DNA of 64,000 nucleotides from Anthoceros angustus. Its lineage: Eukaryota > Plantae > Anthocerotophyta. Shown here one piece after another: positions 7,346-44,669 of this stretch. The notes under the pieces are model-generated. The model was not told the origin of the DNA and ran no database searches. It saw only the letters and a program-made list of their open reading frames with translations. Numbering within the stretch: the first letter of the stretch is position 1; each line of letters starts with the position of its first letter. The DNA is taken from the NCBI GenBank assembly GCA_010909165.1, contig VJWM01000187.1, positions 372,001 through 436,000 on the forward strand, in the 5' to 3' direction. Made by a program: the position numbers and the translations under genes.

Positions 7346-7417
7346 GCGCCAGAGACTAGACCACCTCGGACTTGAAAAGACAGAATGACAAAAGAACTCG
7401 CGCTCTGAGGGAAGCCA

Positions 7418-10028: not shown

Positions 10029-10060
10029 ATGGGCTTGCTGCTGCAGCTTTGGGATGCGGC

Positions 10061-10985: not shown

Positions 10986-10989
10986 GATT

Positions 10990-18581: not shown

Positions 18582-18606
18582 CTTATATAGACCCCAAACC
18601 CTAACC
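18582..18606 (-). promoter_or_regulatory. Putative TATA box plus telo-box between the divergent genes of YR copy 2
   Basis: CTTATATAG followed by AAACCCTAACC. Position conserved in all three copies. Confidence 0.5.
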
Positions 18607-21990: not shown

Positions 21991-22257
21991 CGAAAGGCAA
22001 ACGTAACAGCGTGAAAGTGAAAAACTCAAGTGCGAAAGTGGCTGAAGAGAGAGAAAAAGACTTTTAAAGTGGTTGCACAAACAGCGATTCTAAAGATCTT
22101 GAGACCTCCGCCTCGGTGGTCGAGTGGGAGGCGTCTCGGCCCCCGGCTCCGCCGCCGAGAGGCAGGCGCTCGTCGGGCGCCCGGCCTACGGTCTCGGCCT
22201 CGGCCTCGGCCGTTCTCGCGTAGCCCGGCGTCCGTTCTAATAATATAATCTAAGGCT

Positions 22258-22965
22258 CAATTCACGAGCTCTTCCAAACAAAAATTCCCACTTTGCAAAA
22301 ACCATGCATCTATAACGGATGCATGCGGACGCAAAATCGGTAAGTGCTCTTGAGCGTACTCACCGCCACATTACATCGTCGGCAATGCTCTTGGCCGGCA
22401 GTTCCTCGAGATCTTGAGACCATGTATATAACTCCGGTGGCCGGAGCGGATGTAATTTTGTTTTCGAGGCACTCCACTTGAAAAAGCTCTCGCACTTTCC
22501 TTGCATTTCGAACTGGAACAAAAGTCTGCAAAATCCTTGGGCGGATAGCTTTGGGCCAGCGCGGATTTCCTCGGGTCGTGACTCGTCATGACCCTCATTT
22601 CTAGGAGGTCCACCAACTTCCCAACAACCCCTGGTCAAGGCTATAGCTGCAGTACCCAAAGCCTCGTAGATTTCTTGCATTGAGGTCCTTTCTTCTTTAC
22701 AAGCCACGTACATAGCGGCGCCACATCGTCTTCACAACTCCCTTTTCTCAAGACCCTCGCCTTCTTGTACAAGGAACTTGCCAATACACGTGTTGTGCAC
22801 AATTCTCATTCTTCTGCGAGCTCAAATCCTATCAAAGCGGATGTCATTGCCGTGAGTGGGAACCCGTGCATTCGTGTTCCGCGTGTGGATGCAACCCATT
22901 TTCCTTTGCGCTTTGTAGTGCGGATGCAAGTGGTTAGGCCAGCATGGTCGAGCAAGTCATCCGTG
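22258..22965 (-). pseudogene. TFIIB: TFIIB-like gene U1 (cyclin-fold repeats; 5' zinc ribbon deleted)
   Basis: MYVACKEERTSMQEIYEALG...GVIYMVSRS...NVAVSTLKSTY...AWFLQSG resembles the TFIIB core (YIACRQE..RTVKEI; VIYI..; GVAEGTIRNSY..AWY). Confidence 0.8.
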
Positions 22966-23004
22966 TATCGTGGGGCGTCCCTGCTATCTGCTCCATCAAT
23001 AAAT

Positions 23005-24884
23005 CCACGAGGGCTTTGGACAATGAGTGACTAACACAATGATTGTTTTCTCAAGCAGAGTAAAGAATTCCCGCGGCTTTGGACAACCTTGACACCTTAC
23101 GAGGGCTTGTCCGTTTATGAATATATGTAAGTCGCATCCCTCATTTATATACCCAAGTTTTCCTTGGCCCTTGGGAATCTTCGTGGAATTTTGCATCCGA
23201 AACCCCTAATTACCATGGGCCAAGGAACAATCATCCTTGGATTTCGTCATCCCTTTTTTTACTTCCTTGAGGTTGATTCCGTCCTTGGACTTTGGCCTCA
23301 CAAATTTTTCCACAAAGTTCTTCTTTCTCGAGCAGGGCCTTGAGTCCGCTAGCCTATGCGCCTCGGGGACGCCGGAGTCTGCCGTCCTATTGGCGCACTC
23401 CGGCACACCCGCTGAGCCAAGATGCAGTCCGTCGGCCTACCCGCAGATCGAGCCTCCCACTCCCCAATCGACGTTCTCTACGGTTTAGGGTTATCGGGCC
23501 TACCACTCCAGTCGCCGTCCTTTCGGCCCTCCTGAGACTTCTCACGGTGAGTGCACGATGGCGGTGTCGTGCAATCCCGACCACATGCGGTGAAGCTTGA
23601 GAAACCGTTTTAATTTTTGAAAGTGTTTCGTAGAAAGGGCCTATGTAAATTAGCCTACTTGTACCAAATATCAAAGGCTATCGCGTCAAGCTATGTTGGA
23701 GCTTGAAATGACAACTTGCATGCGAGAAGGAAGCGAAGTCAACCAAGAACAACCTTTAGACTAAACCACATCCTTGTAGGCGGTGAAAACCAAGCGTGGG
23801 ATGAAAACAATCACTACTATTGAAGTTTTGAAAAGGGTGGAGACCCCATTAAAAGCGTTGAGCGTTTTTAGAGGACTTAACTTTCTGAAGAGAAGCTCTT
23901 TTGCCACCAAAATTTTCAAACCTCCTAGGAGCAAAGATTTGCATAGTACTAAATTGCAATCAAGAATGTAGGTCGCTAGAATGAAGGTGGCGAGATAGTC
24001 TAAAATCTTATGTGAAGCAGTCATGTCCATGCACACGATGTTTGATTTAACGTAAGCAAAAATCTTGTCACTAAGGGCGTGGGACGGCGAGTCTTTCAAT
24101 CCATGAAGTCCATCGGCAAACCTTTAACTTGCATGGTCGAGTGTGCATGAGTGTAAGTGTTGTTGGGAATGCGTGTTGGATCTTGGTGGAATGCGATGCG
24201 GATGTATGGATGGGCGGGTCGGATGCATAGGATTCAAACATTGGATTAATGGAGAGTCTCAGTCACGGCGGCTATATCGACTATGTGCGGCGACATACTC
24301 CTCACATCATTCTTGGCACCGGGGACAAACATTTGACCCCTTGGCAAGCATAACAAATTTGGCGTCATAATGCACCAGTCTATTGATACATTTAATTTTA
24401 CGTAGTGAGAAAAAGTCACGACCATCTTGCATGCTAGTATGTGAGCGCACACACACTGAGCTATTTGATTGAAGGCAAGTTCACGGTAGCATAATCTAAG
24501 GCTCAATTCCACGAGCTCTTCCAAACAAAAATTCCCACTTTGCAAAACCATGCGGTACTATAACGGATGCATGCGGACGCAAAAATCGGTAAGTGCTCTT
24601 GGCGTACTCACGCCACATTACATGCGTCGGCAATGCTCTTGAGCGAGGCAGTTCCCTCGAGATCTTCTGGACCATGTATATAACTCAGCGGTGGCCGTGG
24701 GGAGCTTCGGATGTAATTTTTGTTTTCCGAGGCACTCACGGCTTGAAAGACTCTCGCACTTTCCTTGCGCATTTCGAGCACAGAACAAAGCAGTCTTTGC
24801 AAAAATCCTTGGGCGGATAGCTTTGGGCCAGCGGATTTCCTCGGTCTGTGACTCGTCATGCAGCCCTCATTTCTAGGAGGTCCA
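23005..24884. repeat. TFIIB tandem unit U2 (continues at 44106)
   Basis: Head-to-tail after U1. Near identical to 10990-12484 plus 22246-22615. Confidence 0.9.
24503..24884 (-). pseudogene. TFIIB: TFIIB-like gene U2, 3' half (split by Gypsy insertion)
   Basis: KSIADACNVA and the same C-terminus as U1. Joins 44106 across a TCCA duplication. Confidence 0.78.
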
Positions 24885-25075
24885 GGTCCAGCGCAAGCAG
24901 CGTGACCTCGCAATTTGCCTACCAGCCCTGCTTACAAAGCTAAGTCACTAAACACACTGCGATCTCCTTGGCCTTGGCCGGGAGCAACAATCCTAGCCTT
25001 AATTGTCCTTGGCCTATGACCAAGGGCAAGGCTACAAAAGGTGGGTCACTTTAAGAGGCAGGCCCGAGGCACGGG
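24885..25075. repeat. Repeat A1 of Gypsy 1 (duplicate of ~25706-25870)
   Basis: TACAAAGCTAAGTCACTAAACAC...CCTATGACCAAGGGCAAGGCTA occurs on both sides of the left B repeat. Confidence 0.85.
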
Positions 25076-25077
25076 CA

Positions 25078-25710
25078 GGTGAATCAAGCTGGAAAATTCT
25101 CCCAACGACAATGCAAGCGAACCACAAGAACCTCTAGGAGACAAAGACACGGCGGGGACAGTATGGTGTCTATTAGAACAAGACAAACATCAACAATCCA
25201 GAGAATCCATGGTGCCTACATATATAGGCAAAACCCAGAGTTCTCGATGAAGTGTCCACCGTGTCGATGGTGGGCACTTTATAATCCTACTTTCCTTGGC
25301 CTTGAAATAATAATATTTTATGTTTATGACCTATTCGTCCTTTTCCTTGATTTATGATTTTTATGTATTTTCTAATATAAATCTATCTATATATCGTCAT
25401 TAACCGCGCCTTACATGCATACCATGCATAGATAGCATGCCATGACACATCACACACATGTCCACATACATCACATGTCATCCTTCATCTCCATACGTAT
25501 GCATACATGGCACACATGCATACATGGCATACATGTCATGTGCAGGCCATCCATGGGCCATGTACATGACATCATCAAGCACTTGACGCCGGGGCTTATG
25601 CGAGATGCTCGATCGATATCTAGTCATTTGATTGGGGCTTATGCCGGGATGCTCTAGTATATCCGGTCATAGAGTCTTAGGTGCTCTGTTTCCCATACGA
25701 CATGGTGTCA
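25078..25710 (-). repeat. LTR-like repeat B1 of Gypsy 1
   Basis: ~630 bp match to 43468-44105; ends in CA. Confidence 0.88.
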
Positions 25711-25949
25711 GCGCGCCCGTATGCATGCCTACCTGCTCTACAAAGCTAAGTCACTAAACACCGCACACTGCGATCTCCTTGGCCTTGGCCGGGGCAACAA
25801 TCTAGCCATAAATTGTCCTTGGCCTATGACCAAGGGCAAGGCTAAAAAGTGCCTAAGAGAGGCCGGGGCCAGCAACCCACAGGAAACTTGGAGGCCTAGC
25901 CACCGGTTTCCCACAAATTGTCTAGACCATCTTGGCCTAGAAAACAAAC

Positions 25950-27500
25950 AACTACTTACCACGTCCCCACCAGCGAGCGTAGCTTGTCCAACAGCGGTGG
26001 TTACGCGAGGAGGAATGGCGTCATCTTGAGATCCTCATCATCGATGGGTCTTCTTGTGCCTCACCTTAATCGTAATCTCGGCGGCTTGAATCCAGAGAGA
26101 TCAACTGTTCTTCCACAAAGCGCTTACATGCATCGATGAAAGGGATGCCATCACATCCGGCATCCATGTCTCATAAGCTTCGTGTTGGATAATTGTAACT
26201 TCGAAGTGTAGATGTCTGTGGCGAGCCTCACGAGCAGTTGAAAGCATTCTTCTCCTCTCGAGTCCAAGCCGGATCAACATGAGGGGTCCTCAATTTGTTG
26301 GTCGAATGTAGCTGAGGCCACCTACCACATGATGCCTGTCCGGATGGTGGAAAACTCGAAACCACTCTTTGAGAAAAATCAAGCGGCGAGGGTATGTGTC
26401 CCCGTCAACGAATTCTGGCAACCTCATCCCATCAAACCATTGATGCATTTGGAAGTGATGCTGCAACTTCCTCCATGCACCCTCGCTTGTCGGGCCAGTG
26501 GCGCTTGTGACCCGGTGGAGCTCAAACAAATCCGGTGTTCCTGGGATAATGCTCCACCCTACTTTCATGATGCTCCTCAACTGATGAAGATGTGAAGCTC
26601 ATCATAACTTCCTGGAATACCGTTCGGTCATCTTGGCGGAGTAGAAGATGCTCCACTTACGCATCTTCATCATCCACGAGGTCCCATGCCTCACAAACCT
26701 TGCTTGAGTTGGCGGTCACACACACGGAGGCACGTTCCAGACCTCCTCGCTTGTTGAGACCTCCTCCATGGCTGAGAAAAGGTGCAACCACAGAATTTTT
26801 TCACGGCGTCTGGCGACAATCATGGTGTACAGGCGCTGCGCTCCTTGCTCAGTGGGCGGTTGCTCACTGCTCACGTGCGAGGCGTGGTGCTCTGCTGCAT
26901 CGACCACCGCTCCTTGATTGGGACCTTTCTCCCAAACTCTTGCGGCTTTCCATGTTCGTAGGATGCTTGCGTGATCGTCCCCTCTTGCGCTTGATTGGTG
27001 GCACTTCCTCTTGGCCTTCACCTTGAATGTGGATAGGGCAAGACTTTTCGCCTTCTCCTATGCACGTGTGACGGACCAGGCGCTCCCCATCCGCTCAAGC
27101 AAAACCACCTTTAGAAACACGGTGAGGAATTCTCAACAGCTTGGTTCTGTGCATGCATCGATATCCTTCGTAGCTCTACCCGCTCCTTGTTTCGGTCGAA
27201 TTAGACCCTTGTCGAAATCGATCCTACATGCCTCATAATCCTCTCTTCACAATTCCTTGCACATGAAACGGCTTCTCAACAACTCTGTCGCCCCTTAGCA
27301 TGTGCGATCCCATGAATTTGGCCCCAAGCATCTTGTGTCCTTCTTCAACTGCTGCACATCAGCTTCTTTGACTTCCAACGTGTGTGAATTTAAGACAACC
27401 ATCGGTACCACCTTCAAAGAGCCACGTTCACACTTAGCACATTACGGTGCTCACATAGCCATTCTCCTTCGGAACCCGTCTTGGTTTGAGGCAAAGCAGA
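25950..27500 (-). other. Extra ORF-like region 3' of the integrase in Gypsy 1
   Basis: ~1.5 kb with coding-like fragments (WFDGMRLPEFVDGDTYPRRLIFLKEWFRVFHHP). No domain recognised. Confidence 0.35.
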
Positions 27501-27599
27501 TGGTAACCACGTTACACATAGCAACATGAATTCTTAAATGGGTTGTGTGCCCACACTCCTCCGGCAACTGCTGGTGGCGTCAGTCGAGGCATTCGTGTA

Positions 27600-30500
27600 T
27601 CCGGTCGGGCAAATGGCATGGAGCCAAATGCTTCATGTGTTCCTTGCACCTTCGCCATCTCTTCCTTCAAGTTCAACCACACCTTGCTCACCAACACAAC
27701 TCTCGATAAGCCTCCTGTCAACATCTAACGTGCTTGCGGGCTGTCTTTGCAAGTACGTAATCTCGGATGCAAACTTGCGGGCTTTGGGCTTCCACGAGCC
27801 CCAGCGTATAGCATACCTGGTCCGATCTTTGGGCCAAATTGTCCATAGCCATGGGAAGAATTCTTTGAAATACTTACGCTCGGCTTGAACTGTCCAAGCA
27901 CACATTTGCATCTTTGCTCCATCAAGGATGGAGTAAGTGTCCTTCACCACATTCGGCAACACTGCGTTGCGTCCGAATAACAAAAGTATGGACTGAAACT
28001 TCCAAGAGGCTTGCACACCCACGTGACCCCAACACGATGTAAGGAGCAATTCATCCCAACACTTGGGCTCCACTGTCGGATTTCCTTAGTGCATCCTTGA
28101 AGGTTTGCACTAGCCTTTCGCGGGCCATCGGCTGTGGATGATCCTCGATGTCCTCCACAGTGATCAATGAGACTCTGCCAGCAAGGTCTGAATTCACCTC
28201 GAAACTCGTTACCACAGTGCATGAGCACCTCTGCGGCTCCCAAATCGGTGAGCACACTGCAAAAGCTCTGCGGTGTATGCGAGGTTCTCAGTAACGCCAC
28301 TTCAACCCACTTAGAGAAATGCTCAATCATGACCATGCAATGTCGGTTACCTTGCTTTGTGAGGAAGCTCGGCATAAGGTCGACCATCTAAAAATAGCCC
28401 CACGATTGGTAGGGGTGCAACACCACATCACAGGTGTTAAATCTGCTTTGAGCATCACATGCAGCACTTAGCCACCACCTTCTCGACATCGCATACATCC
28501 ACGGCCGCGTACTCTTCAACATGTGGTGTGTCCTCTTCACACCAAAGTGGCCAAGGGTTTCGTGCACCTTGGTCACTATGCCCACTCTTTCCTCGGGACT
28601 TGGTACTTTCCTTACGAGTTCTCCTTGTGATGTGCTCACCATCTTCCCATGAGTATCGGCCGCGCCTTGAGTTTAGCCAAGCTGCTTGATCATTCCGGCC
28701 TGCCTTCCTTGACAAGCAGGCTTGAGGATGTCTCCAAACATCCAGCGGACTCTGTCGGCACATGTCCTTCTTCATGATCATCTATCACGGCCATGAGTGC
28801 CATGAAGCTGGGTGCACCATCTGTGCCCCTCATCTCGAGCTCTGTGACATCCTTGTCACTTTCCGGATTTATACGCATTGTGATGTACCTTGCACGCCCT
28901 GCACGATCTCCATATCGTACTCGAGATGGCGGCCGCCCCAGCTAGCTTACCACTCAACTTCATGTTGGTCATGATAATGAAGTGGCTGTGATCTGTGACC
29001 GATTAAAACGCCTTCCATACAGATAGACCACGAAATGCGAATCGCCCATACTGACAAGACACTCTCCCTCATATGAGGAGTAGTTCACTTGAGTTGTTAG
29101 ATCGGCTTGCATAAGCTATCACTCGCTCAACACCATCGCACCATGTTGTGACAACACGCTCCAATTCCGATGCTCCTGCATGAAAGGGTGATCAAAATTC
29201 GGCTGGCCAACATAGGCTTCTCGCCAGCGGTCCAAGATCTTGCCAAGCCAACTCTCGGTCTTGGTCCCATTTCCACATGTCTTTCTTCAGCTCATACAGA
29301 GGTTTACATGTGGGCGAGGTCCTTCATAAACCTAATAGTTCACCAAACCCGGAAGGCTCTAAGAGCAGCTACATCCTTTGGTCTAGGCATTTGCATCACT
29401 GCACCTTAGGTGAGGCATGATGCCTCCTGGTACTATCATGCCAGATCGTCTGGGAAAGCAAACTTGCATTTCTTAGGATGAGCTTTCAAACCCGAGGACC
29501 TCGTAGCAATATCTCTAGATGCTCCATATGTTCTTGATTGTCTCATGAAGACCGGATATCATCTATGTAGCAACGCACAAATGGCGACCTCGATCATTCT
29601 TTGGAAATATATAGAAGCATTTTCTTCAGCATTCTCCCACTCCCAAAGCTGGTCCTTCCCCAGGTGTCTTGCACTTGTCCGCTCTTCAATCACAATTTGG
29701 TTGAAGCAGCGAAGTCCAAGGCGTAAAGAACTTTGCCTTACCTATGGCATCGAAAATCTCGTCAGTAGGCATGGGCGTCCATAGGAGTCACCTCGTTTAG
29801 AGGTCGGTAGTCGCCACACATCCTCCTGTCCTTCCATTCACCGTTCTCATCCTTCTTGAGGTAGGGGCCAGTCCGACATATTGAGAGCTTGATTTTCTTA
29901 TCAACCCGCTCAACAACTCTTGACGTTTGTCAACAATCTCCCATTCTGCGAGCGGCGTGCCTCCTTGAAGACGGCTCTTCATGAGTCGTCACTACTTGAA
30001 CTTGATCTTCTCATACCTACCCTCCTTCCAACGAATGCAAAAGCACCCTTGTGTTTTTCTCAAGCATGTTGATGATTTTCTTATCTTCCGGCTCACATCT
30101 TACGCAATGTGCCATACATGAACCTCTTCGTCACACTCTTGGTGGGCGATTCGGTATCCACGGCCATCTTGAATCTCTCCCTGACTCATCTTCCTCTGCC
30201 TTAGGAACCTCTTTATCCTGTAGTTGGAGGAAGGCTTTCGCTTCCCTTGCACGCAAGTTGGAATAAACTGTGCTTACCACACCTCGGGTAAGTCAAATGC
30301 ATCCAAGCATCCCTTGCAGTTACATGCCCATGGTGCGAGTGTCCTTCTTGGCAAAGCCCATCGCTTGCTCGCGTTCCTCAACATTGAGCTCTCAAGCTCA
30401 TTCCCTTCAAATCCGAATCACACCATCTCCTCCCGTGCGAAGGCATAAGATTGCGGTGTGCTCACGAGTTGGCCATGCCCTTCGGCTTCCCCTACTCGAT

Positions 30501-30800
30501 TCACGGGGTAAAATGGCAACTTGTCCATCCTCTTCACTGAGCACCTTCCCAACTCTAGGATATCATCCACAACCTTCCGGAGTTGTCAAATTCTGTCTTT
30601 GTCGAGCACCTCCGGTCCAGCCACATTTGTCCGATGCTTCTGCTGTGTGCATATGAGCCACGCGTCCATGATCAACTCATTGCGAACCACGCCCGAATCT
30701 CTTCATACAGGCCCTAACGTTTGTCCATGGACACACATTCTCCGAATGTACCAACATCGTGGATTCGCAATCTGGACTTCTCGCGTGATTAAATGCGAGC
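27600..30800 (-). pseudogene. pol: Gypsy 1 pol (RT, RNase H, integrase), frameshifted
   Basis: PMPTDEIFDAIGKAKFFT (~29730-29775), CYIDDI (~29560), HETLGHFGVKRT, IEHFSKWVEV and post-integrase HLAPCHLPD. Confidence 0.88.
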
Positions 30801-30899
30801 TCGGCCAACACGCCTTCACCTTTGCCTCACTGCTGTCGAAAATGTCTTGCATTCCCATCCGCGATCGGATATCCACGGGCTTGACAAGGCTTCTAGCGC

Positions 30900-31910
30900 G
30901 CTTCCCCAGCGAGTTCACGCAGGCAGCTGCTCGGCGCCTCGGCGCTTCCGCTCGGTAGTGTTGGATCTTGCGAACACGAATTCGACCCTAGCGCGGAATC
31001 TTCTCATCCTTTTCCACGCAGTATATTGCCGTATCTTGACGCCACGCAACACCGCTTCGCCACTGCGATTCTGGCGAGCTCCAACAAATGGATGCCTTGA
31101 CCCACCTTCCATCGTACTGAGCCGTCGATCGTCGATCTCCGACTTGGCGGGCCTCATACAGGATCGACCTCTCGGGACATGTGTCATGAGATTCCATCGA
31201 TCCTCCTTCCTTTGGTTCTCTCGAACCTCTCGCTTGATCCAAATATTACGGCGCACAACCTTAAGCACACCTTACGCTCTCTTGGCATCTCCGGAGAGGA
31301 TAACTCCCGTTTCCTCCACATCTCATGTCGATGCTCACGAGACCGTGGCAATCATGGCGGCCCGTCATCCTCGTCTGCTCTTGCCACCACTCCTATTCAT
31401 CCTTAGAGGAATTGTGCAACATCGTGAAATCTCCTCTCCACCGAATGGTCAGCAGAAAGCGTGCAAGGGATCAACCCCATGGCGGGACGGTGAGTTCCGT
31501 CACCCCAAGACATCATATGTCTTTGCGTGACCAAACATCTCACTTCAACGATGCCGGCATCCTTCGTGTGCTTCAATTCAATCTTCACGGGCCTCCTCGT
31601 CATTCCCGGTACATTCCTTGGTACTGCGGAGGTGGTGATGTTCACGCGTCGCTCGGAGCGAGCTTGTGTCCATCTGACTTTAGTGCCTCCTGCACCGTGC
31701 TCCCAGTGATTGGATCCGCTCCACGTGTCTACAAGTCGTTCTTTGCATAGCCATCAAAGGTCACGTCCGTGTTATCAATCATGGCAACACCTCCTTCACC
31801 GCTCCTCGCATCGATGCTCGCCACACAACCGCCATACTAGGGAGAGATCCCGCGATTCAAGCTCCTTTCGCCATTCTCGCATGATGTTTTGAAGGTTTTC
31901 ACTCCAAGCC
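30900..31910 (-). pseudogene. Gypsy 1 gag-pol linker, portion left of YR copy 3
   Basis: Removing copy 3 restores the reading frame KNGSAEEDYLGVKTFKTSCENGER across 41806/31910. Confidence 0.55.
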
Positions 31911-32449
31911 ATCAGAAGTCGCTCTGCCTGGGGCCTCTCGACGCCCATTGGTTTTTTTCGGTAGTGTGTGAATTTTAAGAAAGAGAATCAACTTTGGCCA
32001 TTATTTTACAGATAGTAAATTCATTACAATATAGTAGAAAACATGCCAAGTGGGTGAATATGATCTACCATCAAGGTGGAAAAGAGCACTAGAGTAGAAA
32101 ACATGGCGACCAAGTGAATACCAAAAGGCCTAGTAAAATCGCTTCTAGTAATCCCACCAAAATCGCTAACTGACAAAAACATTTTCGTTAAATAATATTC
32201 ATGCGGATCCGTGATATACAAAACCAACAAAGAACCCTTTTCTTTGCGAGTGATATCCGTAATTGCATGAAATAAATTCAACTAATGAAGAGTAAATACC
32301 AGATAGAGTGAACTCGCTCAACAAGAAACCTACAAACAAAACCAAAATTAGCACCCAAACCGTAATTACGCTGCTACTAGTAAACACTAAAATAAAAACA
32401 TTGATACTCACCTTATTTTGGGAAATTTATCGTACAATTATATTGAAAA

Positions 32450-35400
32450 TGTAATTTTCACACCACTTGGCTTGATTGGTACTTGTACATTATCATAATT
32501 GGCAACCAATTGATGAAGCCGAGGACTTGGACGAAATTGACCATCTTCCCAAGGTCACAACCTAAAACAACACAACCATTAATTTTCAATCTAGTAAACC
32601 GATTAATAAAAGCATAAAGCTTACCGATCCCGACGGATTTTCGCAGATAGCAGCTTGAAATATCTCGAGGCACATCCTTCTCGCCTGTGTCTTTCCCACC
32701 GTAATCTCCGAACCTCTTGCCGCTCTTTCCGCCGCTTGCTTGATGCTTAATATGCTCTTGTCTCCTCCGCATTTCTCCGCCTCAATCTCAAGGGCTTTCT
32801 CTGCTTAGAGACTCGTAATTCAACCGCCGCCTGCTCTCTATAAGTGCCTCCAAATCCTTTTGAACTCCATTTCGTTTCAATTTGTCATTCTCCACCCCTG
32901 CTTGGAGATCCGTGCTCAAAGCCACTTACATTTCCATTTGCAGTCACAGGCTGCAATATATCCAGAGGTGCTACCACAGCCACACTTCTGTCCTGGTTAA
33001 CTTCAGATGACTGATCACACTCACTCTGCACAATGCCCTCCAACAGAGGGGCCACTGCATCAACTTCCCTCAGGGCTGTATCAATGTTGAAATGAGGGAC
33101 AGTAAGCCTGCTTACACTAGTCGAAGGATTCACAATCTGCCAAGAAGAACACAATCAGGAAACTCCAAAATGAATGAAAACAACAAACAAACAGCCAAAG
33201 AATCAACCTTGTCAACATATGGAATTTGAGAACACCGTTGGTCCGCTAGTATCCATCCGGATGCCTTGGCACTTTAAGGTGCCCGCCAATAAAAACAAGA
33301 ACCAAGATGATTAAAAAACTAACATGGCAGACTACAACAAAGCAACTTCACAATACCAACGAACTTCAAGACACAAGTGGACCACATGGTGCAAAAACTA
33401 GTTCCCCAACATTGTTCGTGGTCCGCTTTCATGATGAATAAGAGGGGCCAGAGGAAAGACCGACAAATCAACAAGTCGACACGTGATTATACACAAGTCC
33501 CTACATACTTGACAAATCTCAAACACTTACATTACTAACGTGTTGCACTTGCAAGGGACGCGATCAGCCGACTAAAATACTATTTCGAGTTACATTCAAC
33601 ATCTGGAAGAACACCCTTAAATCATCCCGCATCCGATTGAGTTCTTCATTTAAAAGCTCGATAAGATCGCTGCTCACTGTGAACAAGAACTCTTTGTACT
33701 GTTTTGCTTGACCGAACGGCCATATCTCGCAAAACATATGAGAACGTTAGGAACGCATACAAAGACTCAAATGTCACAAGCTTTCACAACATATTACCTT
33801 GAAAATCCAAAGATCCGCTTTATGGCCAACACACTTCTCCCAAAGATCGAGGGCACCGAGCCATCGTCAAACGTAATCAATCACGTTACGGCAGCTCTTA
33901 TTGGTGTAGCCAGCCAAGCCAGCCCATGGTCTTCATAAATCTTGACAGCATTCCTTTTGAAACACGAAGTTTTGCATACCAAGCGAACAAAAAACAAGCT
34001 TAGTAAATAGAAACCACAAAACTCAAGCCCAATAAACCAAAAACTTACATTGATCTTGGGTTATCAATGGTTGAATTGAAGAGAAACCCCGAATTGACAA
34101 ATTGTCATGTGCACCACTTGGGAGAGTGATCAATAAAAGGTTTCGATGACGCCCTTTCGTAGATCTTGACCTTTTGACTAAATGCTCACTGGTAGTTCTT
34201 CATGTCCACTTTGTAATTTTTGAATGCCGCTTCATACGCAAATGAAGACGAGCTCAATACATCAAAACATCAAACAAAAAGAAAACAAAAGACTACACCC
34301 ATCGAACAAAAGGTCCACCGAATATGCAAATGAGAAGTCCCTAATGAGCAGTTATGTAACTCTTCACCACCTCGAACCCCAAAACCCGGTCATGCAAAAA
34401 TATGCACACCGAAAACAATATAAGCATAAGGGCTCGTTTAAGAGACCATAAATGAACAATCAAAGTGCACCCCAAAACCAACAATATTACCTTTTGAGCC
34501 CCCGCCCAAATGAGCATTGATGATCTCGTGAAAGAATCACGCTCATCATCGTAAATCAACTTCACCTCTTTTCGACATGACACAATCCCAAGGTCCTTGC
34601 CGATTTTCATGGACGCAACCACGCTCGGGACCCATGGAAAATTCCATGAAACATGTTGATCATCGAACATCGTAACCAAGCCGGCTTTGGTTCAGATGCA
34701 CTTTGTTAAACCGTTAAACCACGAAAGAAAGACATCACCGCACAAGTGAAGATCAAGAATCACCATGTGAAGGAAAGTCGAACTATCAAAATCAACAAGT
34801 AAGAAAACATCACTACTTACGCTTCGGAGAAAATCTCCTGTTGTCCTTGATTCGAACTTGATGGAAAAAGGGTATCGAATAAGATTTAGATCCTTGTGAG
34901 GAATATCCTCAACAGTATCCATCCGACCCACTCACTTTCATAAAGGCCCCGAGACTTGACACCGCTTATTCCGCTTTGACCTATCCTCCCCACCACTCAA
35001 AGCATCATCATTCCCCTCTCGACGACGGTCAAATCCGCTCAAAAATTTCTTCATCATCAATTTCCTCCATACCCATGGCAAAGTCATCTTCGGGACCGCA
35101 CACTTTAGCCTCTCAAACATATCGAGCACTTCTTGATCGTGGATGACTCTGTGGTCGAACCAACAGTATGGAAACGCCACAGAAAGCATCTGCTCAACCA
35201 GACACAAATTTCTAGACTCAGAGCTTTGGCGACTCACAACCATGGGATCGTTATCAAGAAATCATTCTCCCCACAACCGGACCTCTCTCTCGACATCGGG
35301 ACATAGTTAGTAATCTCCAAGAGGACCTTCAACCAATGCCACAGTGTCGAGTGTCCACCCTTCTTCTCTTCTCGACAAACTCACCGCACGTCGAGCATCC

Positions 35401-35650
35401 TTCTTGGATGAGAAGTGCCTTGGGTTTAGGAATGCCTCTTTTGGAACTAAATATGTTCCTTCACTGCACCAAGACACCATCAACTTTACCATCATCCTGC
35501 GGTGGATGAGTTGCAGGAGGACGGCCGACTTGACACTGCCTACAATGCTTAGCCATGACTTCGCCGTGGACCCTTGCTTCTTTCCCGTCCAGAGCCCAGT
35601 GGGTTTCCTTTGCCATCTCGCAAAGAAAAGCACCAGGTGATCAAAACACA
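32450..35650 (-). CDS. Crypton/DUF3504-like tyrosine recombinase, copy 3 (multi-exon; ends approximate)
   Basis: VASMKIGKDLGIVSCRK, RGGEELHN (~34351-34375), YTNKSCR (~33888-33908), GHK (~33820), then an intron followed by Tyr (~33723). Confidence 0.82.
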
Positions 35651-38600
35651 AAAAACATTTGAACGTTAATGAACTTGCAAACCAATATGAAAAGACTTAC
35701 ATGGAGGTGAATGCTTTCAAATGAGAACTCAAGGGTCTAAAAGTTGATTATACCACAATCGAAAAGAAGGATGTGGAGATATTGCAGACACATCCTTTGA
35801 TCTATACATCGTTAGATTTTGATCCCTCCATTTTAAGTTAGAGAAGAAACTTCCATTTTAACAAACCCACATACTTCAAACACTCTTTTAATAAATATTG
35901 ATAGATAGCCCCGACACAACCGAGCCTTGATCATGACACACCAAGAAACACAGAATTTCACACTGTGCAAATAGTTATCCCGAGACAGTATGCACTGAAT
36001 AGAAAAGAAATTTCACACGATGACAAATTTCACCTACAATGAAATGAAGTTTAGTGAGGTGCAGACATTTAATGTCAAGAACAAAACTGAAAACAAGGAA
36101 AAGGTGTAAACATCTCTTACTAAAATCAATTCACCCTAAGAATTTTCATGGGTCTCAAACAAAAGGAGAAAAAGTTAACAACAAAAGATCGAACAAAACA
36201 TAGCAGAAAAGAACCACGATTGGAAGCAACACCAACCATACCGAGATACAAACCACGTAAAACATAATGCAATAAACAAGAACAAAAGTCAAACATAAAC
36301 ACAAACTAACATACATCACAGAAAAGAAAGTGACTACAAGCGACACAAAGATCGATGAAAAGACAATACATGTAAGCAAAGACGACTAAAAGTGATCACC
36401 TTCCAAATACGATATAAACAAGAAGCACATCAAGACAAAAAAGCAACGACAACGATGACAAAACAAATAACTTAACCAAGACAAATACCTTTAAAATGTT
36501 TTGCAAAGGCAGATGCATAGAACAAGCTCTTTCCGCATGAAAAATAAGAGCATAAGTACAATCGAAGAACACACAGTTGACGCAACACTTTAAGAGATGA
36601 AGCATCACAAAGACAGAGATTACAAATCGTCAGAAGAGCTGATGCCTTGTATCACATAACGAACAATGTTTATACACAAAGAAGAACAATCGAGACATAA
36701 GAAAAACAAATACACGCTCGAAAAGACACCCGATAAACAGAAGACACGTGAGCAAACGAGATAAACACAAGTTAAAACAATGACTTATTGAACAAGATAT
36801 ATAGAAAATGAAACAGATGAAAACACAAGACACACAAAGCATAAGACATTACAACGCATCGACTTCATGAGCGTCTGAAAAGTAACGACGCAACAACAAG
36901 CATAACACATTAACATGAAGCAATACCACAAAGAAAAGCAACAAATCAAGAGCAACATAGTCACACAAAACAAAGACTCAACAAGACAACAAGTGATGCA
37001 AAAGCAACACCAAGAGAGCAAAATGAGACAAAGAAATGCATACCAAAAAGACATAAAACGATAGCGAGAGAAACAGCAAGGCAAACAATAAACAAAAGTC
37101 AGAACACTTATAGTCAAACGCATGAGAGGTTACAAGACACCTGCCTTGACAACGACAACGACAGCAAAACCCTTGTCGAACAAAACAACAATAAAAGAAA
37201 CTAATAACAGAAGACCTTGGCCAATAAAGCAAAGCAAATATAAAAGAAAAACACGGCAAAGCAAGATGAACAGATGTCAAGCTAACAAGACAAAACAGAA
37301 TCAACCGAACATGAAACACAACAAGACGAGAAACGCTAAGACATCTAAAACAAAGCGCTAGAGCTGACCTTAAAGCAAAACGCGAGCACCGGCCACGCAA
37401 CAAGTGAAACCAACCGCGGACAAAGCAAGAGAAAAACAAAACAGAAACAACCTAAATAACGTAAAAAGGGACATAGAGAAAGAAGAAGAGAGACCTGACA
37501 AAAATGACCTAAGGTCACAAGCAAAACCCTTGGCCCTAAAAACAACAATGAAAGAAACCTCAACAACAAAGAAGACCTTGGCCTCGGACCGAAAGCATAA
37601 AGCAACATAAAAGAAACCAAGGAACAACGAAACCAGAGCTCCTACCGTCAAAGCACATCAAAATACTTTGAAACGGACTCAAGACTAAAGAATACCGCAA
37701 GCTAACAAGAAAAAGAATCACCGACATGATGCAAACACCACAAGACGGGCGCAAAAGAACGCAAGGCAACTAAAAGGGCCTAGGAGCGGGATGGACCTTA
37801 GAAGCGCCTGACAAGCGAGCACCTTGGCCCGGACCGCAACAAGTGAGAAACCCTTGGCCCTCGGACAAAGCATGAATGAAACTTGAAACCTGGAAATTGG
37901 ACGCCAACGTGCGAGGGACATAGAGAAGGGAGTAGAAGGGAGACGCAGATGAGGAAATGAGAAGACGCATGGAAGGTCCCAAGACCACAGCAAAAGACCA
38001 AAAAGGTCCGTGAACCCGCTTATATAGGCCCCAAAACCCTAACCCTTCTCACTGCGCCGCCACTCTCTACAACCAAATTTGAAAATACCAAACCTACCCA
38101 CCGAGGACACCAACCAACCTAGGGTCGCCATTCGCACGCCACGCCTCAACCGAACCTAGTCACCTTGTTCCAAACCTAGCCATGCAACACCTAACCTAAT
38201 TTCCGAACCTCTCGTAGTGGCGAAACGAACTCACCAATGAACACCGCCACGCACGCTCTTCAAGCATCCGGAACCCTAATTCAAGTCTATTTAAGGAGCA
38301 CTCACGCCTCGACTCACTTTATCGCCCACCACGCCGCTAGGCCGCTCCCCTTCTACGCCCGCCTAGCACGCCGCCAGTGTGTCACTCGCCTACAGCCCCG
38401 CTAGTTCTACGCAGTTCCATCCTCCGCCAGCGCTGGTTCCGCCCTACCCCTACCGCCCACCACGCCAGCCGCTTCTTTCCACGCCTTGCTCACCGCAAGG
38501 CACCTTTTCACCACTCACCACCAACAGCGCCTCTCTTTCTCAGTGAATAGCGAGCCGCCCAGAGCCCGAACGCCGCCCTCGATCAACACCGCCTCGATCG

Positions 38601-39399
38601 CTTGGCTTCCGCCTTTGGTTCCAGCGACGCATACAATAATCATCATCGATCGGTGGCCTAGGTGAAGAGCACGCCAAGGCCTTTAGCGATCAAAGGTGAA
38701 ACTTCGCTGAGTTTGTTTTGCCTTTGAAATTGTTTGTTGCCTTTGCTTTGTGCCTATGCTCATGCTTTGACCGCTCACCGCGGATACCACACAACGCTGG
38801 TTCAAACGAAGAGTTGCTCCTGCAAGAACAGTGCCGATTTTCCGCCGACGCCGGTTTCACTCACCGTCGCTTAAGCCGCTCCGCAAGCGCCAAGGAGACA
38901 AAAGAGGTCTCGCCCTCCGTGTACGAAAAACACTCTACCGTGGTCGCTCTTTATTCTTTTTCTTGCGCCGCTAACACACTGCCTCGCGCACTCTTGCCTC
39001 CGCCTTTGCTGTGAATAGCGCTTATCGCGCTAAGTTTGCTTGCGCCTTTTCTTACCTTGAATGTTGCCGCAGAAAACCTCGTAGACTCCTCTACACACGC
39101 CCTTGAGTCCAACCGCAAGAAGACATCGGGAGCAGTAACAAGCCTCGTAGCGAACTTATCTTTCTACGCTTTCGTTTCCGCTTTCAAAGTCGCGCACGAC
39201 CGCCGAAACGCCAAGTGTCTTCGATCTCGACCGCTTGACGCTTTCTCGCTTAACTCTCTTTATTCTCGCTTAATCTCGGTTAATCATCCGGACGTAACCC
39301 GTGAGTGACTCAAGACGCCGCCGCAGGTGCGTGCCACTGCATGCAAGAGATCGCAGCATCACCGTCTCAACCTATAGAGGCCGCATCGATGCGCCTTTC

Positions 39400-41530
39400 C
39401 TTAGGCATACGCTTGTCTTAAACCTCGTGTTCAAAATGTAGCTAGAGTCGATCATTGGTCAGCGTTTCGAGTCAACATCGCGTCTGACAACAACTTGTCG
39501 AGTCAACTTTATGCCGAGGTATTTATAGCAAATACGCGTGCTGTGGCATGCATCGCACGTAACTTCTTGATATTGGATCACCCGACGAAGTTCAAAAGTC
39601 CGTAAACATATTTTATTTCTAACCGTGTTTTTCCTAACTATTCGCTGGAAGTCAAATTGCATGTCCGAATATCTTAACGAGACGCACAAAAACCATTGAG
39701 CGTAAGTCATATCTTTGCCGTAGTATATTTTATCAGCTGAAAGTACGCGCATGCATAACATGCCGCACGAAGAAACGCAAGAAGAGCAGCACGCCGTGTT
39801 AAAAGTTCAAGTTATTCATTGGCCCGACTTGCTTTTATTACGTAATGGCATCCGAGAATGAGAGCAACGATGAAATGGTCGACATCCAAGAAGGTAATGA
39901 TCTCGCCACAGCCAAATCCATTTTCGGTTGAATCCATGGCTAAATGACTGCTCCGTAAAGTGACAACAATAGTAAAGACCCAACAAACCTTAATAAATGC
40001 GATCAAACAACAATGTTCCCACCCATGGGGATCCAGGATATGATGACAGTCAAGTTCAAATCCTCTCATTGAGATACGAAAGATAGTTGAGAAAGGTAAT
40101 ACATTTCAATTAAATTGAATCCCGTGAACATTTCTAACTCGATATCTTTGATACAAGACTTACGAGCACACTATGTTCACATCAATGGACAAAAGGACTT
40201 GCAGCTCCTTTGCGTGTGTGCCCAACCGGAAAAAATTAAAAAGGTAAAGACTTGGTTCGCAACTTTCAGAACTATAACGATCAGATCGCAACTCACTTTA
40301 GTTGTATATGGTTACAGGATATTAAGAAGAATCTCAACAACAATTTCAATTAGAGTTGGAAACAATGACTGGTCCGAGGTTTAATGGACATGGATCTCAA
40401 TTCACCGATTTTGGAGGTAAACAACTAACACTATATATGTATTTATTTACAGTAATAAATACTAATTTCCTTGAAAGTGTCACGAACAAGTTGTTGCAGC
40501 TAAGGAAATTAAGGAGAAAATTGAAGCAATGGATGATAAAATCAACAACATACCATCTTTCATCGTAATTGTTGTTGTATGTTTGTAATTAATAATTAGT
40601 ATATTTGTAAGTAGTATATATTAATCTGCTTTTTCAAAGGACAAAAGAGGAAAAAGACGAGTCAAGATAATGCACCAACGTATGGACCATCGAAAGAATT
40701 TGCCGATTTTGGAAAATGGATGGATAACTTTCAAGATCCACAAGTCTTCCAAGATTTTAAAATAGATATGTTCCCATTTGGGAACATAGCCTCAAAGATC
40801 CAAAATGACCGCAATGAAGATGGGTCGACAGCAACCCTAGAGCAGTACATGGAGATCCAGAAAAGTAAGTGTTATCGGTTTATATTGTTCTTAGTATAGT
40901 TTACTGAATCAGTTTTTGTAGTACTAATGAAATTTGTGTTTTGGTAATGTAGAAATATCAGCAGCCATTGAAAATAAGGAGCTAAAAACCACAGACTTGT
41001 TGACTCTGATGGAAGATCCAGAAACTACAAAAAACATTCAAAAGGTTAGTTCCAGAATAATTTATGTAAACAAGGAAAATTGATATTCATTTTCAAATAT
41101 GTAAATTCTAACTTGATACTTTGCGTAACGCCAATCACATTTCCGTAGTGTGGGAAATCTTCACAGCCATTGCCTCACATTAGTGAGAAAGGTATTTACC
41201 GAGCAAGATCTTCTTCGACTTGAAATGGAGGTAAAATATTAACTGCTTTTTGTTTGTAGTTATCAAGAATCAAAAGGAGTTGTTTGCACTATTTGAGGTT
41301 AGTACATCATATAAGTGGTGAAATTTAATATGTATATCTAACATTTACCATTGCCTCGCAAATATTCCTGCTTGACGAAATTTTAAAATGATTAACTTTC
41401 TATCCGGACCGTATAATGAACAAAGAAAGAAGTATTATTCTCAAGACGAGCAGATCCGAAATCGCGGTACACCCCTTCAACGCCAGAAGAAAGTTAGAAA
41501 GATAAATCCAAACCGTGAAAAGACAAACGA
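39400..41530 (+). CDS. Multi-exon cargo gene of YR element copy 3
   Basis: Colinear with 19900-21990. Peptides HYVHINGQKD, ISAAIENKELKTTDLLTLMEDPETTKNIQK and VRKVFTEQDLLRLEME, with conserved introns. Confidence 0.55.
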
Positions 41531-41805
41531 ATAAAGCGGAAAGTGAAAACTGGGCGAAGTGAAAACTGTGAAAGAGAGAGAAAAAGATTTTAAAGTGGTT
41601 GCACAAGGCAACAGTTCTAAGATAAAGACAGACCGGCCACCGCCTCGGCCTCAAGTCGAGTGGGAGGCGCGGCCCCGCCCAGACTTACCGCCGCCTTACG
41701 CTGGAACGAACGCCGCTGGCGACGCCAGAACGGTCTCGCCTAACGGCCGACCGCTCGCCGCGGACGCCCCTCCGTGCCCGATCCGCCCCCAATACAAGAT
41801 AATCT

Positions 41806-43300
41806 TCCTCAGCACTTCCATTTTTGTCCAAACGCCAACGCCCTCGACCGGGACCTCGACACCTTCGCATGCCGAGTCTTCTCGACTGCCTGAAACTCTC
41901 CGCATCTTGGCCATTGCCCCGCACTCCTCTTCGCAGGACGCTTTCACCAAAGTCGGCCTTTTCTTTCTTTATGCAGGCCATCATGCCAAACGCCTCATCT
42001 CACTCCAGTCGAGAACAACTGCCTGCTCGGCCATGTTCTATCTCTTTGAGCTCCTCCACTTGCCCGAGGAGAGCCTTGACTTAGGCCCTTGCCCTTCTCC
42101 TTCTCGGTGATGCAAGCTTGGGCTTCATTTCTGGATGAGCTTCCCAACACGCCTCCATGTGACCCCATACACCCACAAGACTTACAGGCTTCTTGCCCTT
42201 GGGCCACGGCTTGTAGCATTGGCATGTGCGCTCCGCATCGCCACACTTCACACTGCATTGTTAGCTGGCCTCTCCTTGCACATGTGGTACTTGCCATGTC
42301 ACGAGGGCCTGCTCCGTCTTGGTATCTTGGGAACACGGAATTCCGTGTCCTCCGGACCCGTCTTTGCGAAGGGCCCTTCACGACTCCAGTGATCCTCCAA
42401 GTAAGCACTTTGCATCTCCTTTGAGCACCTTCTCGGCAATTTGATAGGCGTCTATCAAGCGATATCTCTCCCATCGCTCCATGCGTGAGTCCATCACCTT
42501 CTTTGTCACGGCAATGCGCCATGAAGATCTCGGACCTCCCTCGCCGTCTTGACATCCGTGTCTTCCACGGAACCTTCAATCGAGGTAAGATGCGCAATGT
42601 CGTTAGGCTGAAAGAAAACCTCAGTTCTGGATCTTTTCAGGGCATAGGAAACATGGTGGTTAACTTGGCGAACATCAAGTCCACGGATGCTCGAGCTTGT
42701 CCTCGCTGAGGGGTGCAAACCAGCCCTCTTGGCTGCCTCTGCACCGCTTCTCTCTCCCTGGATCCCTTCTCATCTCGTAATACATTAGAGCCTCACCCGC
42801 AAGGTAGGATGACATCTTCATGAACGCCATCCTCGAGTGAACTCGTCCTTGTATTTCATCTTGTTTTCCGCCATTGCCCAACGAAACTTCTCCTCGAATC
42901 GCAAGAGACATGCTTCCATGTTTTCTGTGAAGACATCGTTCTTTGGTGTGAACTCAAGCTCCATTCTTGCACTCTCCGCCCAATCGCCAACTGCTCTCAG
43001 ACGCGTTGTCTCGTATTGTTCCTGGTGTCCTCTTGAATGGCGAGTAGACGACTTCTCCGATGAAGGCGCAGTGTCCTTTCGCCACCACCGATCTCGGAAC
43101 ACCATCAATGGTTACTTCTCCTATGCCCCGACCACCGCACGGATGTTGTCAAAGGCAAATTGTTTTCCACCGTTAGCCCAACCAGCCGAAAAGTACATCC
43201 ACGCCTCTATCCACAAACGGCTGACGTATGCGTGCTCTTCTCCGCATCGCTAACTCAAGAATCGTGAGACTACCACACCTAAGCGTATAATCAATGGCGA
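41806..43300 (-). pseudogene. gag: Gypsy 1 gag region
   Basis: Lies next to the 5' repeat. Gag-like fragments (FDGTEF at ~43300; SSYLAGEALMYYE). Confidence 0.6.
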
Positions 43301-43457
43301 ATTCTGTCCCATCGAAAAACATCGCCTATCTCTTAGTTGCCTCGCAACACTCAACCTTCTCGGATCGCACTGCCTCGGGTTGGATGGTGGACGACTTCCG
43401 CCTCTTCCTCCAATCCCACTCCTCCAAGATCAGATCTTAGTCCCCAACAAGGTGGAT

Positions 43458-44105
43458 TGTTGATGTGGTGAAATCAAGATGGAAAATTCTCCCAACCCGA
43501 CAATGCAACGAACCACAAGAACCTCTAGGAGACAAAGACACTAGGACGGGTATGGCTGTCTATTAGAACAAGACAAACATCAACAATCCAAGAATCCATG
43601 GTGGTGCCTACATATATAGGCAAAACCCCGAGTTCTCGATGTCCACCCATATCGATGGTGGGCACTTTATAATCCTACTTTCCTTGGCCTTCAAATAATA
43701 ATATTTTATGTGTTTAACAGCCTATTCGTCCTTTTCCTTGATTTTATGATTTTATGTATTTTCTAATATAAATCTTATATATGCCATAGCAGCGCCTTAC
43801 ATGCACAACCATGCATATAGATTGCATGCCATGACACATCACCGCCACATGTCCACATACATCACATGTCATCCTTCATCTCCATACGATGCATACATGG
43901 CACACATGCATACATGAGACATGTATGCATGCAGCCATCCATGGGCCATGTACATGACATCATCACACTTCAAAGATCGTGGCTTATGCCCAGACTTCAA
44001 AGATCTAGTCATTTCAAGATTCGTGGCTTATGCCTGTGATGCTCTAGCCAAGATCCAAATATAGAGTCTTAGGTGCTCGCTTCCATACAAAGAATTCCGG
44101 TGACA
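43458..44105 (-). repeat. LTR-like repeat B2 (5' end) of Gypsy 1
   Basis: TG...CA boundaries; matches 25078-25710. Confidence 0.85.
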
Positions 44106-44619
44106 TCCACCAACTTCCCAACAACCCCTGGTCAAGGCTATATGCAGTACCCAAAGCCTCGTAGATTTCATTGACCGAGAGTCCTTTCTTCTTTACAAGC
44201 CACATAGCGCAGCCACACCGTCTCTTCACAACTCCCTTTTCTCAAGACCCTCGCCTTCTTGTACAAGGAACTTGCCAATACCGCGTTGTACAATTCTCAT
44301 TCTTTCTGCGAGCTCGAAATCCTATCAAAGCGCGTATATCAGTCATGAGTGGGAACCCGTGCATTCGTGTTCCGCAGCGTGGATGCAACCCATTTTTCCT
44401 TTGCGTCAGATGCAAGTGGTTAGCCAGCATGGTCGAGCAAGTCATCCGTAATGAGGACGCCCCACACGCCTCCTTCTCCTCGTGCTCGGTCATTATCGAA
44501 CTTCCTATATTCCAAGGTTTCGCCGACACGACGTTCTAACACTAGACCGCACCACAATGCCGCCTGCACTGTCCTCATAAATCTGCCTTTATCTTGCACT
44601 CTAGACATTTCGACTCCAT
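44106..44619 (-). pseudogene. TFIIB: TFIIB-like gene U2, 5' half (zinc ribbon, B-reader, first cyclin fold)
   Basis: ATG at 44619: MESKCLECKIKADL..EDSAGGIV..CGLVLERRVGETLEYRKFDND, resembling CxxC..GxxVCxxCGLVL..E-W-R-T-F. The two halves total ~895 bp with no introns. Confidence 0.82.
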
Positions 44620-44669
44620 ATTCTCTACTGTCCCGAGATAATTAAAAAGTGGAATGTGTAGCCTTGAAA

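Follow-up and report, generated by a model that had tools for sequence, protein, structure and literature searches.

Transposon-interrupted tandem copies of a TFIIB-like gene in a 64-kb window of the Anthoceros angustus genome

General transcription factors are, as a rule, encoded by low-copy genes, and canonical plant TFIIB genes contain introns, which are assumed here for the parent gene also. Plants possess an expanded TFIIB-like family with many paralogues, often with reproductive roles (PMC7865254), and the male (V) chromosome of Marchantia polymorpha is repeat-rich and carries the gene ORF162 (PMC9261002). A tandem array of TFIIB genes was not found in the literature searched, including the review of plant TFIIB-like factors (PMC7865254). 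The present analysis concerns a stretch of 64 kb of A. angustus DNA, referred to throughout as the window, which, with a probability of roughly 60%, represents a portion of a genuine tandem-repeat family that transposons have invaded and that is probably silenced.

Layout of the units and of the sequences that interrupt them

Comparison of a 2,424-bp reference unit with the 64-kb window by blastn revealed head-to-tail units of 2,424 bp with seamless junctions, in keeping with the units of approximately 2.4 kb that had been predicted. Four successive units are present in the window, together with one diverged duplicate and one inverted fragment (Table 1). The original prediction had placed at least four units within 22258-44619; four successive units do exist, but this interval holds only two of them (U0 and the split U1), the other two being located at 1-12481. 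The units have a junction sequence in common, which is found at 792/796, 24490/24491 and 63090/63093 and recurs in the inverted fragment. Substitutions between units amount to 1-3.5%, noise included, and the diverged remnants differ from U0 by substitutions at 6-9%. An identical 20-nt TATA-box motif, for which the number of matches expected by chance is 0, is present in three units, approximately 195 bp upstream of the TFIIB-like reading frame. Scanning the window for Rfam families and tRNAs gave no hits, and an exact 24-mer from the unit had no match among metagenome contigs.

Table 1. Positions of unit parts and inserted elements in the window
Feature	Position	Strand	Details
Unit end (spacer)	1-792	-	Unit 1631-2418; blastn, junction sequence
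Start of next unit, TFIIB-like coding 3' end	796-923	-	Unit 1-125; cut off by insertion at 926
Insertion	926-10981	.	Copy of the 9.8-kb element over the first 4 kb; remainder with short tandem repeats
Spacer and promoter of unit beginning at 796	10982-12481	-	Unit 924-2422; TATA motif 11126-11145
9.8-kb repeated mobile element	12485-22244	.	Inserted 5 nt past U0 stop codon
Unit U0	22245-24490	-	Stop TAG 22252-22250; spacer 23002-24490; TATA motif 23135-23154
U0 cyclin repeats 2 and 1, with linker	22266-23021	-	
U1 3' half: cyclin repeat 2, plant-type C-terminal tail	24491-24885	-	TFIIB-like coding 24496-24885; stop codon 24498-24496
Gypsy-type LTR retrotransposon, ~19.2 kb	24886-44100	-	Splits U1 between its cyclin repeats
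Nested 9.8-kb element copy	31917-41676		Inside Gypsy-type element
U1 5' half	44101-45553	-	ATG 44619-44617; TATA motif 44804-44823; spacer to unit position 1811
U1 5' half coding: cyclin repeat 1, linker, B-reader, zinc ribbon	44101-44622	-	
2.6-kb insertion	45553-48157	.	At unit position 1811
Diverged remnants (inverted fragment and unit copy)	58905-63153		
Small TFIIB-like coding fragment	58903-58992		
Inverted fragment across unit junction	58905-59267	minus	Unit 2258-2420, then 1-230
Diverged unit copy, first part	59273-59918	+	Unit 1070-1811
Diverged unit copy, last part	62541-63153	+	Unit 1811-2420 and 1-61

As anticipated, the units are interrupted by insertions, which can be recognised from empty sites, from a pair of LTRs and from the recurrence of the inserted elements in further copies. 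The unit at 796-12481 lacks unit positions 126-923, that is, nearly its entire coding region, and the beginning of the sequence inserted in it (926-4967) matches 12534-16461 and 31917-35878. The empty site of the 9.8-kb element can be seen at the U0/U1 junction (24490/24491). The Gypsy-type element has LTRs at ~25081-25713 and 43468-44100 with TG/CA ends, is flanked by a TCCA/GTCCA duplication and includes an extra internal 195-bp fragment at 24886-25080; a Pfam search with 20 long segments taken from the insertions returned one weak integrase match in this element (27947-28387, 14.7 bits) and nothing else. In the diverged copy the 2.6-kb insertion recurs at unit position 1811 (59918-62541); neither U0 nor 10982-12481 contains it. 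In U0, approximately 185 nt are missing between 22963 and 23010, and with them the zinc ribbon and B-reader as well as the ATG and the end of the 5' UTR. Since scattered matching letters persist within this gap, the loss is possibly an assembly dropout, in which case U0 might be whole. As assembled, every copy in the window is structurally broken and none could encode a complete protein.

It is extremely improbable that one or a few copies have been multiplied through misassembly of noisy long reads. The assembly is indeed very noisy, but the units differ in that each has a large insertion or deletion of its own, indicating that the window is not a single locus multiplied in this manner, and the predicted array was upheld in this respect. 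Additionally, word depths on the unit in contigs of sequencing run X1 range from 100 to 1,500, although these depths are without a single-copy baseline and X1 is possibly the source sample itself.

A further reading is that the TFIIB copy is carried by a mobile element such as an LTR retrotransposon, with a 1.5-kb LTR constituting the spacer and the units forming an LTR-internal-LTR-internal chain. The location of the promoter within the spacer would suit such an element, as would the region around unit position 924-936, which is twice a breakpoint (at 10982 and in the U0 deletion). However, the spacer, when read on the gene strand, does not have TG..CA ends, and neither a tRNA-like primer-binding site after the spacer nor a purine tract after the stop codon was found, negatives that are weakened by noise. 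There are no dispersed solo copies within the window, and the inverted fragment crosses a unit junction, as a piece of an array would, all of which renders the cargo reading very unlikely.

The TFIIB-like coding region

Each unit's gene lies on the minus strand, is free of introns and comprises approximately 290 codons of TFIIB-like sequence. Profile positions 16-329 are spanned by 870 nt, which leaves no introns and bears out the prediction of an intronless TFIIB-like gene. The accompanying claim that each unit holds all or part of a TFIIB-like ORF of approximately 300 codons was not sustained, since no copy is open; an ORF of this length was found nowhere, stop-free TFIIB-like pieces reach 123 aa at most, and the largest ORF of the 22-45 kb region (245 aa) is unrelated.

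Homology was assessed with a purpose-written frameshift-tolerant profile aligner and a profile of 341 positions derived from 52 metagenomic TFIIBs, of which 10 had been verified with Pfam; locus L099, from a human oral metagenome and possibly human DNA, was left out of the comparison. A composite U1 reading (44680-44101 plus 24885-24480), employed in this aligner alone, matched profile positions 16-329 of 341 at 82.8 bits and contained no stops, compared with a null of 19.4±3.6 and a maximum of 33. When parts were scored separately, values of 50.5, 43.6 and 43.5 bits were obtained, each significant alone; nulls derived from 300 random window segments were 17.7-19.4±3-3.6, with a maximum of 33. 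A scan of the entire window in 636 sliding windows placed the top seven scores all on the TFIIB-like blocks and on the same strand. The match is colinear and full length, running through ribbon, B-reader, linker and two cyclin repeats, and a plant-type C-terminal tail is matched also. Among 150 TFIIB representatives, the best references were Medicago TFIIB-2 (85.5; null 22.8±3.7, maximum 35.5) and a sequence from the green alga Pyramimonas. These data support a unit gene that is TFIIB-like and of green-plant type. They also render hardly credible the idea that the gene derives from the insertion of a giant virus (NCLDV) rather than from the plant's own TFIIB: nothing was found in favour of a viral origin, whereas the best references are land-plant and green-algal TFIIBs, the C-terminal tail is of plant type and no viral genes are located nearby. 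A scan of viral contigs using a TFIIB alignment was blank, which says little.

The assignment to TFIIB is based on this aligner and its empirical null, and standard tools recognise no TFIIB. The Pfam models PF08271 (zinc ribbon) and PF00382 (TFIIB repeat) gave no match for 10 stop-free pieces, even at E<=10, and searches with stop-free pieces of the PDB, by word and of the ESM Atlas were all blank. The Pfam test was crippled by indel noise, as the control integrase in the same window attained only 14.7 bits. A lack of matches to TFIIB HMMs, which the original prediction had named as grounds for its rejection, was observed with standard tools, whereas the homology itself is recovered in the frameshift-tolerant alignment. 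A two-row tiled profile searched against the PDB produced chance matches only and was abandoned. A word search with the arthropod-like TFIIB L111 retrieved arthropod relatives only and no plant sequences.

The predicted domains were recovered in part. In the U1 composite, the first zinc-ribbon cysteine pair (CLEC, 44607-44596), the EYRKF motif, the linker and both cyclin repeats can be read, whereas the ribbon and B-reader are missing from U0. The region of the second cysteine pair contains three frame breaks, with one or two cysteines readable ahead of GLVL. EYRKF, which aligns with SEWRTF in the B-reader of the profile, comes from a single copy (minus strand, 44512-44498) and might therefore represent a sequencing error. 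A shift of frame is needed at the same place (~22790 and ~44285) in both copies that cover the linker.

Sequence noise and the state of the genes

Differences between copies comprise indels that are 2-6 times commoner than substitutions, with transitions and transversions about equally frequent, and contigs of the high-depth run X1 differ from the window at ~105 indel sites versus 16 substitutions in 3.4 kb. The small frame breaks are indels of 1-3 bp. Indels are enriched at CHG (32% versus 10%) and CG (43% versus 27%) sites, and not at homopolymers. The small frame breaks are therefore attributed mostly to base-calling or long-read noise; from the error pattern alone, we infer that this noise arises at methylated cytosines. 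When one of two copies was selected at every indel to keep the frame free of stops, many paths proved equally stop-free, and the result was discarded. As a practical matter, indel noise at CHG and CG sites in this assembly disguises whether genes are intact or dead, and it blinds standard protein tools.

These observations bear also on whether the units encode a working, multi-copy TFIIB variant expressed at a particular stage of the life cycle, perhaps in gamete-forming tissue, in the manner of sex-chromosome ampliconic genes, with U0 being intact in reality. The exact conservation of the TATA motif in three units, the frame that is free of stops when indel noise is tolerated, the low level of substitution between units (even with noise included) and the scattered matching letters in the U0 gap are all compatible with such a variant, as are the reproductive roles that are frequent among plant TFIIB-like factors (PMC7865254). 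Conversely, the pattern of errors points to dense methylation at CG and CHG sites, transposons lie within and next to the genes, and the frame shift shared by both linker copies could be real. Contigs of a single possible RNA run included none on the stretch, although this is weak evidence. On balance, a working variant seems unlikely. A bolder form of the idea, in which the units constitute a functional TFIIB variant of very high copy number whose B-reader is altered and which serves one cell type (e.g. in sperm-forming tissue) or spreads as a selfish amplicon, and in which they are one of several methylated gene arrays marking a special chromosome (sex or accessory), with the window as a decaying margin, is decidedly doubtful.

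Origin of the array and comparison with known systems

The units may have multiplied through unequal crossing-over, a process suggested by their seamless and identical junctions, and the array may now be heterochromatin that tolerates transposon insertions. The founder might have been a processed (reverse-transcribed) TFIIB mRNA that later gained a promoter. The retrocopy origin that had been predicted has intronlessness as its sole sign, however: there is no poly(A) remnant, the 1.3 kb that follow the stop codon contain no A-rich tract, the sole A7 run is situated upstream of the next TATA box at a distance of 110 bp, and each unit has a TATA box of its own. Nor was a target-site duplication supporting retroposition detected, although survival of one inside an array is not to be expected.

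The window gene resembles canonical plant TFIIB, as represented by Medicago truncatula TFIIB-2 (P0226), in its colinear arrangement of zinc ribbon, B-reader, linker and two cyclin repeats, in an identity of at least 34% at matched codons, noise notwithstanding, and in the shared plant-type C-terminal tail, and the window thereby adds evidence that the array gene is of green-plant type. It differs from canonical plant TFIIB in being without introns and in having EYRKF in the B-reader, and, unlike the dispersed low-copy plant TFIIB genes, it is arranged head to tail in 2.4-kb units with no intact copy in the window. The array is similar to gene-bearing macrosatellites and ampliconic arrays, such as that of ORF162 on the Marchantia V chromosome (PMC9261002), in that each kilobase-scale unit bears a gene with a promoter within a repeat-rich and probably silenced region. 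The window depicts the fate of such an array at a decaying part, where retrotransposon and 9.8-kb element insertions and deletions have accumulated. In contrast to the Marchantia V-chromosome and ampliconic arrays, the cargo here is a general transcription factor; a promoter-bearing TFIIB-like gene in a kilobase-scale array of a bryophyte would extend the plant TFIIB-like expansion in a new structural direction.

Tandem repeat in the window

The window is a decayed, transposon-riddled part of a TFIIB-like tandem array. No ungapped direct repeat of at least 200 bp was found in it; repeats were visible, however, in a gapped self-comparison, and from these a 2,424-bp reference unit was built and mapped back onto the window. 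The resultant map establishes that the 2.4-kb period and head-to-tail order are genuine, with seamless junctions of common sequence between units. The original prediction, which placed at least four units within 22258-44619, was correct as to the head-to-tail repeat of ~2.4 kb but not as to its extent, since only two units lie in that interval and four successive units span 1-45553.

Features of the window located with the 2,424-bp reference unit (+ strand)
Feature	Window positions	Unit positions	Remarks
Unit	1-792	1631-2418
Unit, first part	796-923	1-125
Insertion	from 926		breaks unit begun at 796
Unit, second part	10982-12481	924-2422
9.8-kb mobile element	12485-22244		between unit 10982-12481 and U0
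U0	22245-22964; 23002-24490	1-710; 936-2424
U1 (next unit)	24491-24882; 44106-45553	1-366; 367-1811	split by 19.2-kb insertion; followed by 2.6-kb insertion
Fragment, inverted	58905-59267		across unit junction
Diverged unit	59273-59918; 62541-63153		2.6-kb insertion at same unit position as in U1

The TFIIB-like gene and sequence noise

The TFIIB HMM match anticipated for the minus-strand gene was not obtained with Pfam at E ≤ 10 on stop-free pieces, nor did such pieces match TFIIB by phmmer against PDB, in a word search of 5.8 billion proteins or in the ESM Atlas, failures that are attributable to noise. A control drawn from the window, the Gypsy-type element's integrase, scored no higher than 14.7 bits in Pfam, where a further 19 long pieces of inserted elements had no match. 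Gap events between copies outnumber mismatches 2- to 6-fold; in cyclin repeat 2, for example, 32 against 5 were counted over 403 columns. Gaps are mostly of 1-3 nt, and transitions are about as frequent as transversions. When the window is compared over 3.4 kb with contigs of the public sequencing run X1 whose word depths run to hundreds, ~105 sites differ by an indel but just 16 by a substitution. Among repeated-copy pairs from across the window (e.g. 10994-12481 and 23002-24488, 12527-16000 and 31955-35500), gap events lay near CHG three times as often as random positions did (32% versus 10%) and near CG 1.6 times as often (43% versus 27%), with no tie to homopolymers (21% versus 20%). We infer that the pattern arises from nanopore base-calling, for which it would be expected on methylated plant DNA. 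It is present in the transposons as well as in the TFIIB units.

Reference TFIIB genes were fetched from metagenome contigs by means of a degenerate DNA pattern for EWRTFSND, and a profile was prepared from 52 intron-free ORFs, 10 of which were Pfam-confirmed (with the zinc ribbon, and with TFIIB-repeat E values from 1e-21 to 1e-61); a contig from a human oral metagenome (L099), perhaps human DNA, was left out of the comparison. Alignment to this profile with a purpose-written local aligner, in which frame shifts were allowed at 4 bits each and stops penalised, gave separate scores of 50.5 bits for the 5' half of U1, 43.6 for U0 and 43.5 for the 3' half of U1. When joined for this alignment only, the U1 halves scored 82.8 bits in a match of 274 codons that extends over positions 16-329 of the 341 in the profile and contains 21 frame shifts but no stop, against 17.7-19.4 ± 3.0-3.6 (maximum 33) for 300 random window segments on both strands. 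The top seven of 636 sliding windows in a blind scan all came from 22.0-23.2, 24.2-25.2 and 44.0-45.0 kb of the minus strand, and pieces of these blocks took ranks 1, 2, 4, 5 and 7 in an hmmsearch of 3,356 stop-free pieces, colinear in the profile though none individually significant. Since 314 profile positions are covered by 870 nt, the gene has no intron, and its description as TFIIB-like and intronless is upheld.

The only off-target profile scores near 30, at 6200-7000 and 36200-37400, are probably due to low complexity. A-rich stretches on the + strand (AT skew 0.37-0.57) occur at 6200-7000, 16000-18000 and 36000-37400, respectively inside the 926-10981 insertion and the 9.8-kb copies at 12485-22244 and 31917-41676.

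From the ATG at 44619, U1 reads MESKCLEC, CGLVLE, EYRKF (44512-44498, its sole occurrence in the window), a linker and two TFIIB-cyclin-repeat-like blocks; the TAG stop codon is at 24498-24496 in U1 and 22252-22250 in U0. The predicted ORF of ~300 codons is not open: the reading frame changes every 10-20 codons, and the longest ORF in 22-45 kb, of 245 aa, is unrelated. On the minus strand, between ...AERMR and ...LASSLYKK, the frame must shift by +1 in each of the two copies with linker sequence, at ~22790 in U0 and ~44285 in U1; the cause is a systematic sequencing error, or else a real frameshift that the local copies have in common. Three units have identical copies of a 20-nt TATA-box motif with TATATAAA, at 11126-11145, 23135-23154 and 44804-44823 (chance expectation 0 matches); the motif precedes the ATG by ~195 nt.

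Insertions and losses in the copies

U1 is broken between its two cyclin repeats, its flanks reading …GGAGGTCCA, then 19.2 kb, then TCCACCAACTT…, with the empty site preserved in U0 as …GGAGGTCCACCAACTT…. The 19.2-kb insert has 0.63-kb direct repeats (~25081-25713 and 43468-44100) with a TG start and CA end, a weak integrase match, and a nested copy of the 9.8-kb element at 31917-41676. The left LTR is separated from the flank of U1 by 195 bp (24886-25080) that repeat internal sequence lying immediately inside that LTR, at 25732-25848 (91% identity over 119 bp), and this internal-LTR-internal arrangement suggests a recombinant or tandem Gypsy-type element. Other 9.8-kb copies lie at 926-4967 and 5 nt past the U0 stop codon, the latter with an empty site at the U0/U1 junction. 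U0 has ~40 nt in place of ~225 nt in U1, so that the 5' UTR end, ATG, zinc ribbon and B-reader are missing; assembly dropout could conceivably have produced this gap, in which scattered matching letters persist. Unit positions 126-923, and with them nearly all of the coding region, are absent from the unit at 796-12481. Given these two losses and the split in U1, no copy in the window, as assembled, can encode the full protein, whatever the small-scale noise conceals.

Short tandem repeats (7830-9279, ~200-bp period; 9765-10028, a 30-bp GC-rich unit present nine times) occupy part of the sequence from the first 9.8-kb copy to the unit that follows. Towards its right-hand end, the first insertion contains 0.33 kb (10562-10892) that match 21440-21779 and 40961-41305 of the other copies in inverted orientation; the first copy has therefore undergone rearrangement, unless the element itself includes an inverted segment. 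The 2.6-kb insertion (45553-48157 and 59918-62541) interrupts unit position 1811 in both copies, which are ~5% apart in substitutions, and its longest pieces were blank in Pfam. Its presence both in U1 and in the diverged copy shows that duplication of a segment of 3.3 kb or more followed the insertion.

Origin and affinity

Growth of the array by unequal crossing-over would fit the seamless, identical junctions and the inverted fragment that spans one of them. Repeated mobile-element insertion as the source of the units does not fit these features, and inspection of the sequence around the gene revealed neither LTR-like ends nor a primer-binding site or polypurine tract. The original prediction of an amplified retrocopy, its observation partly confirmed, is partly supported as an interpretation: the gene is intronless and tandem, but only intronlessness points to a retrocopy, no poly(A) remnant was found past the stop codon, and a TATA box of its own is present in each unit. 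The run X2, perhaps RNA and perhaps not, gave no contigs on the stretch, which argues weakly against expression of the units.

For affinity, 150 representatives from an exhaustive search with one metagenomic TFIIB were ranked by frameshift-tolerant score against U1. Medicago truncatula TFIIB-2 was best (85.5; null 22.8 ± 3.7, maximum 35.5), with at least 34% identity over the matched codons, since noise depresses the value, and its plant-type C-terminal tail PH.S.I.P.W..K is also matched in U1; TFIIB from the green alga Pyramimonas was second. These similarities support a probable green-plant origin, at which level the gene is read, rather than within plant TFIIB-like clades, because non-plant references score 72-75, a modest margin below the best. 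No relatives turned up in a scan of viral contigs, a result of little weight.

The Anthoceros genome paper, on nanopore assemblies, limited its tandem-repeat search to periods of up to 2,000 bp (PMC8075897), so that a 2.4-kb unit would escape if the present genome is a comparable case. No tandem TFIIB array was reported in the literature searched, and the word 'tandem' is absent from a review of plant TFIIB-like factors (PMC7865254); in Arabidopsis, the 14-15 TFIIB-like paralogues are dispersed, many having reproductive roles (PMC7865254).
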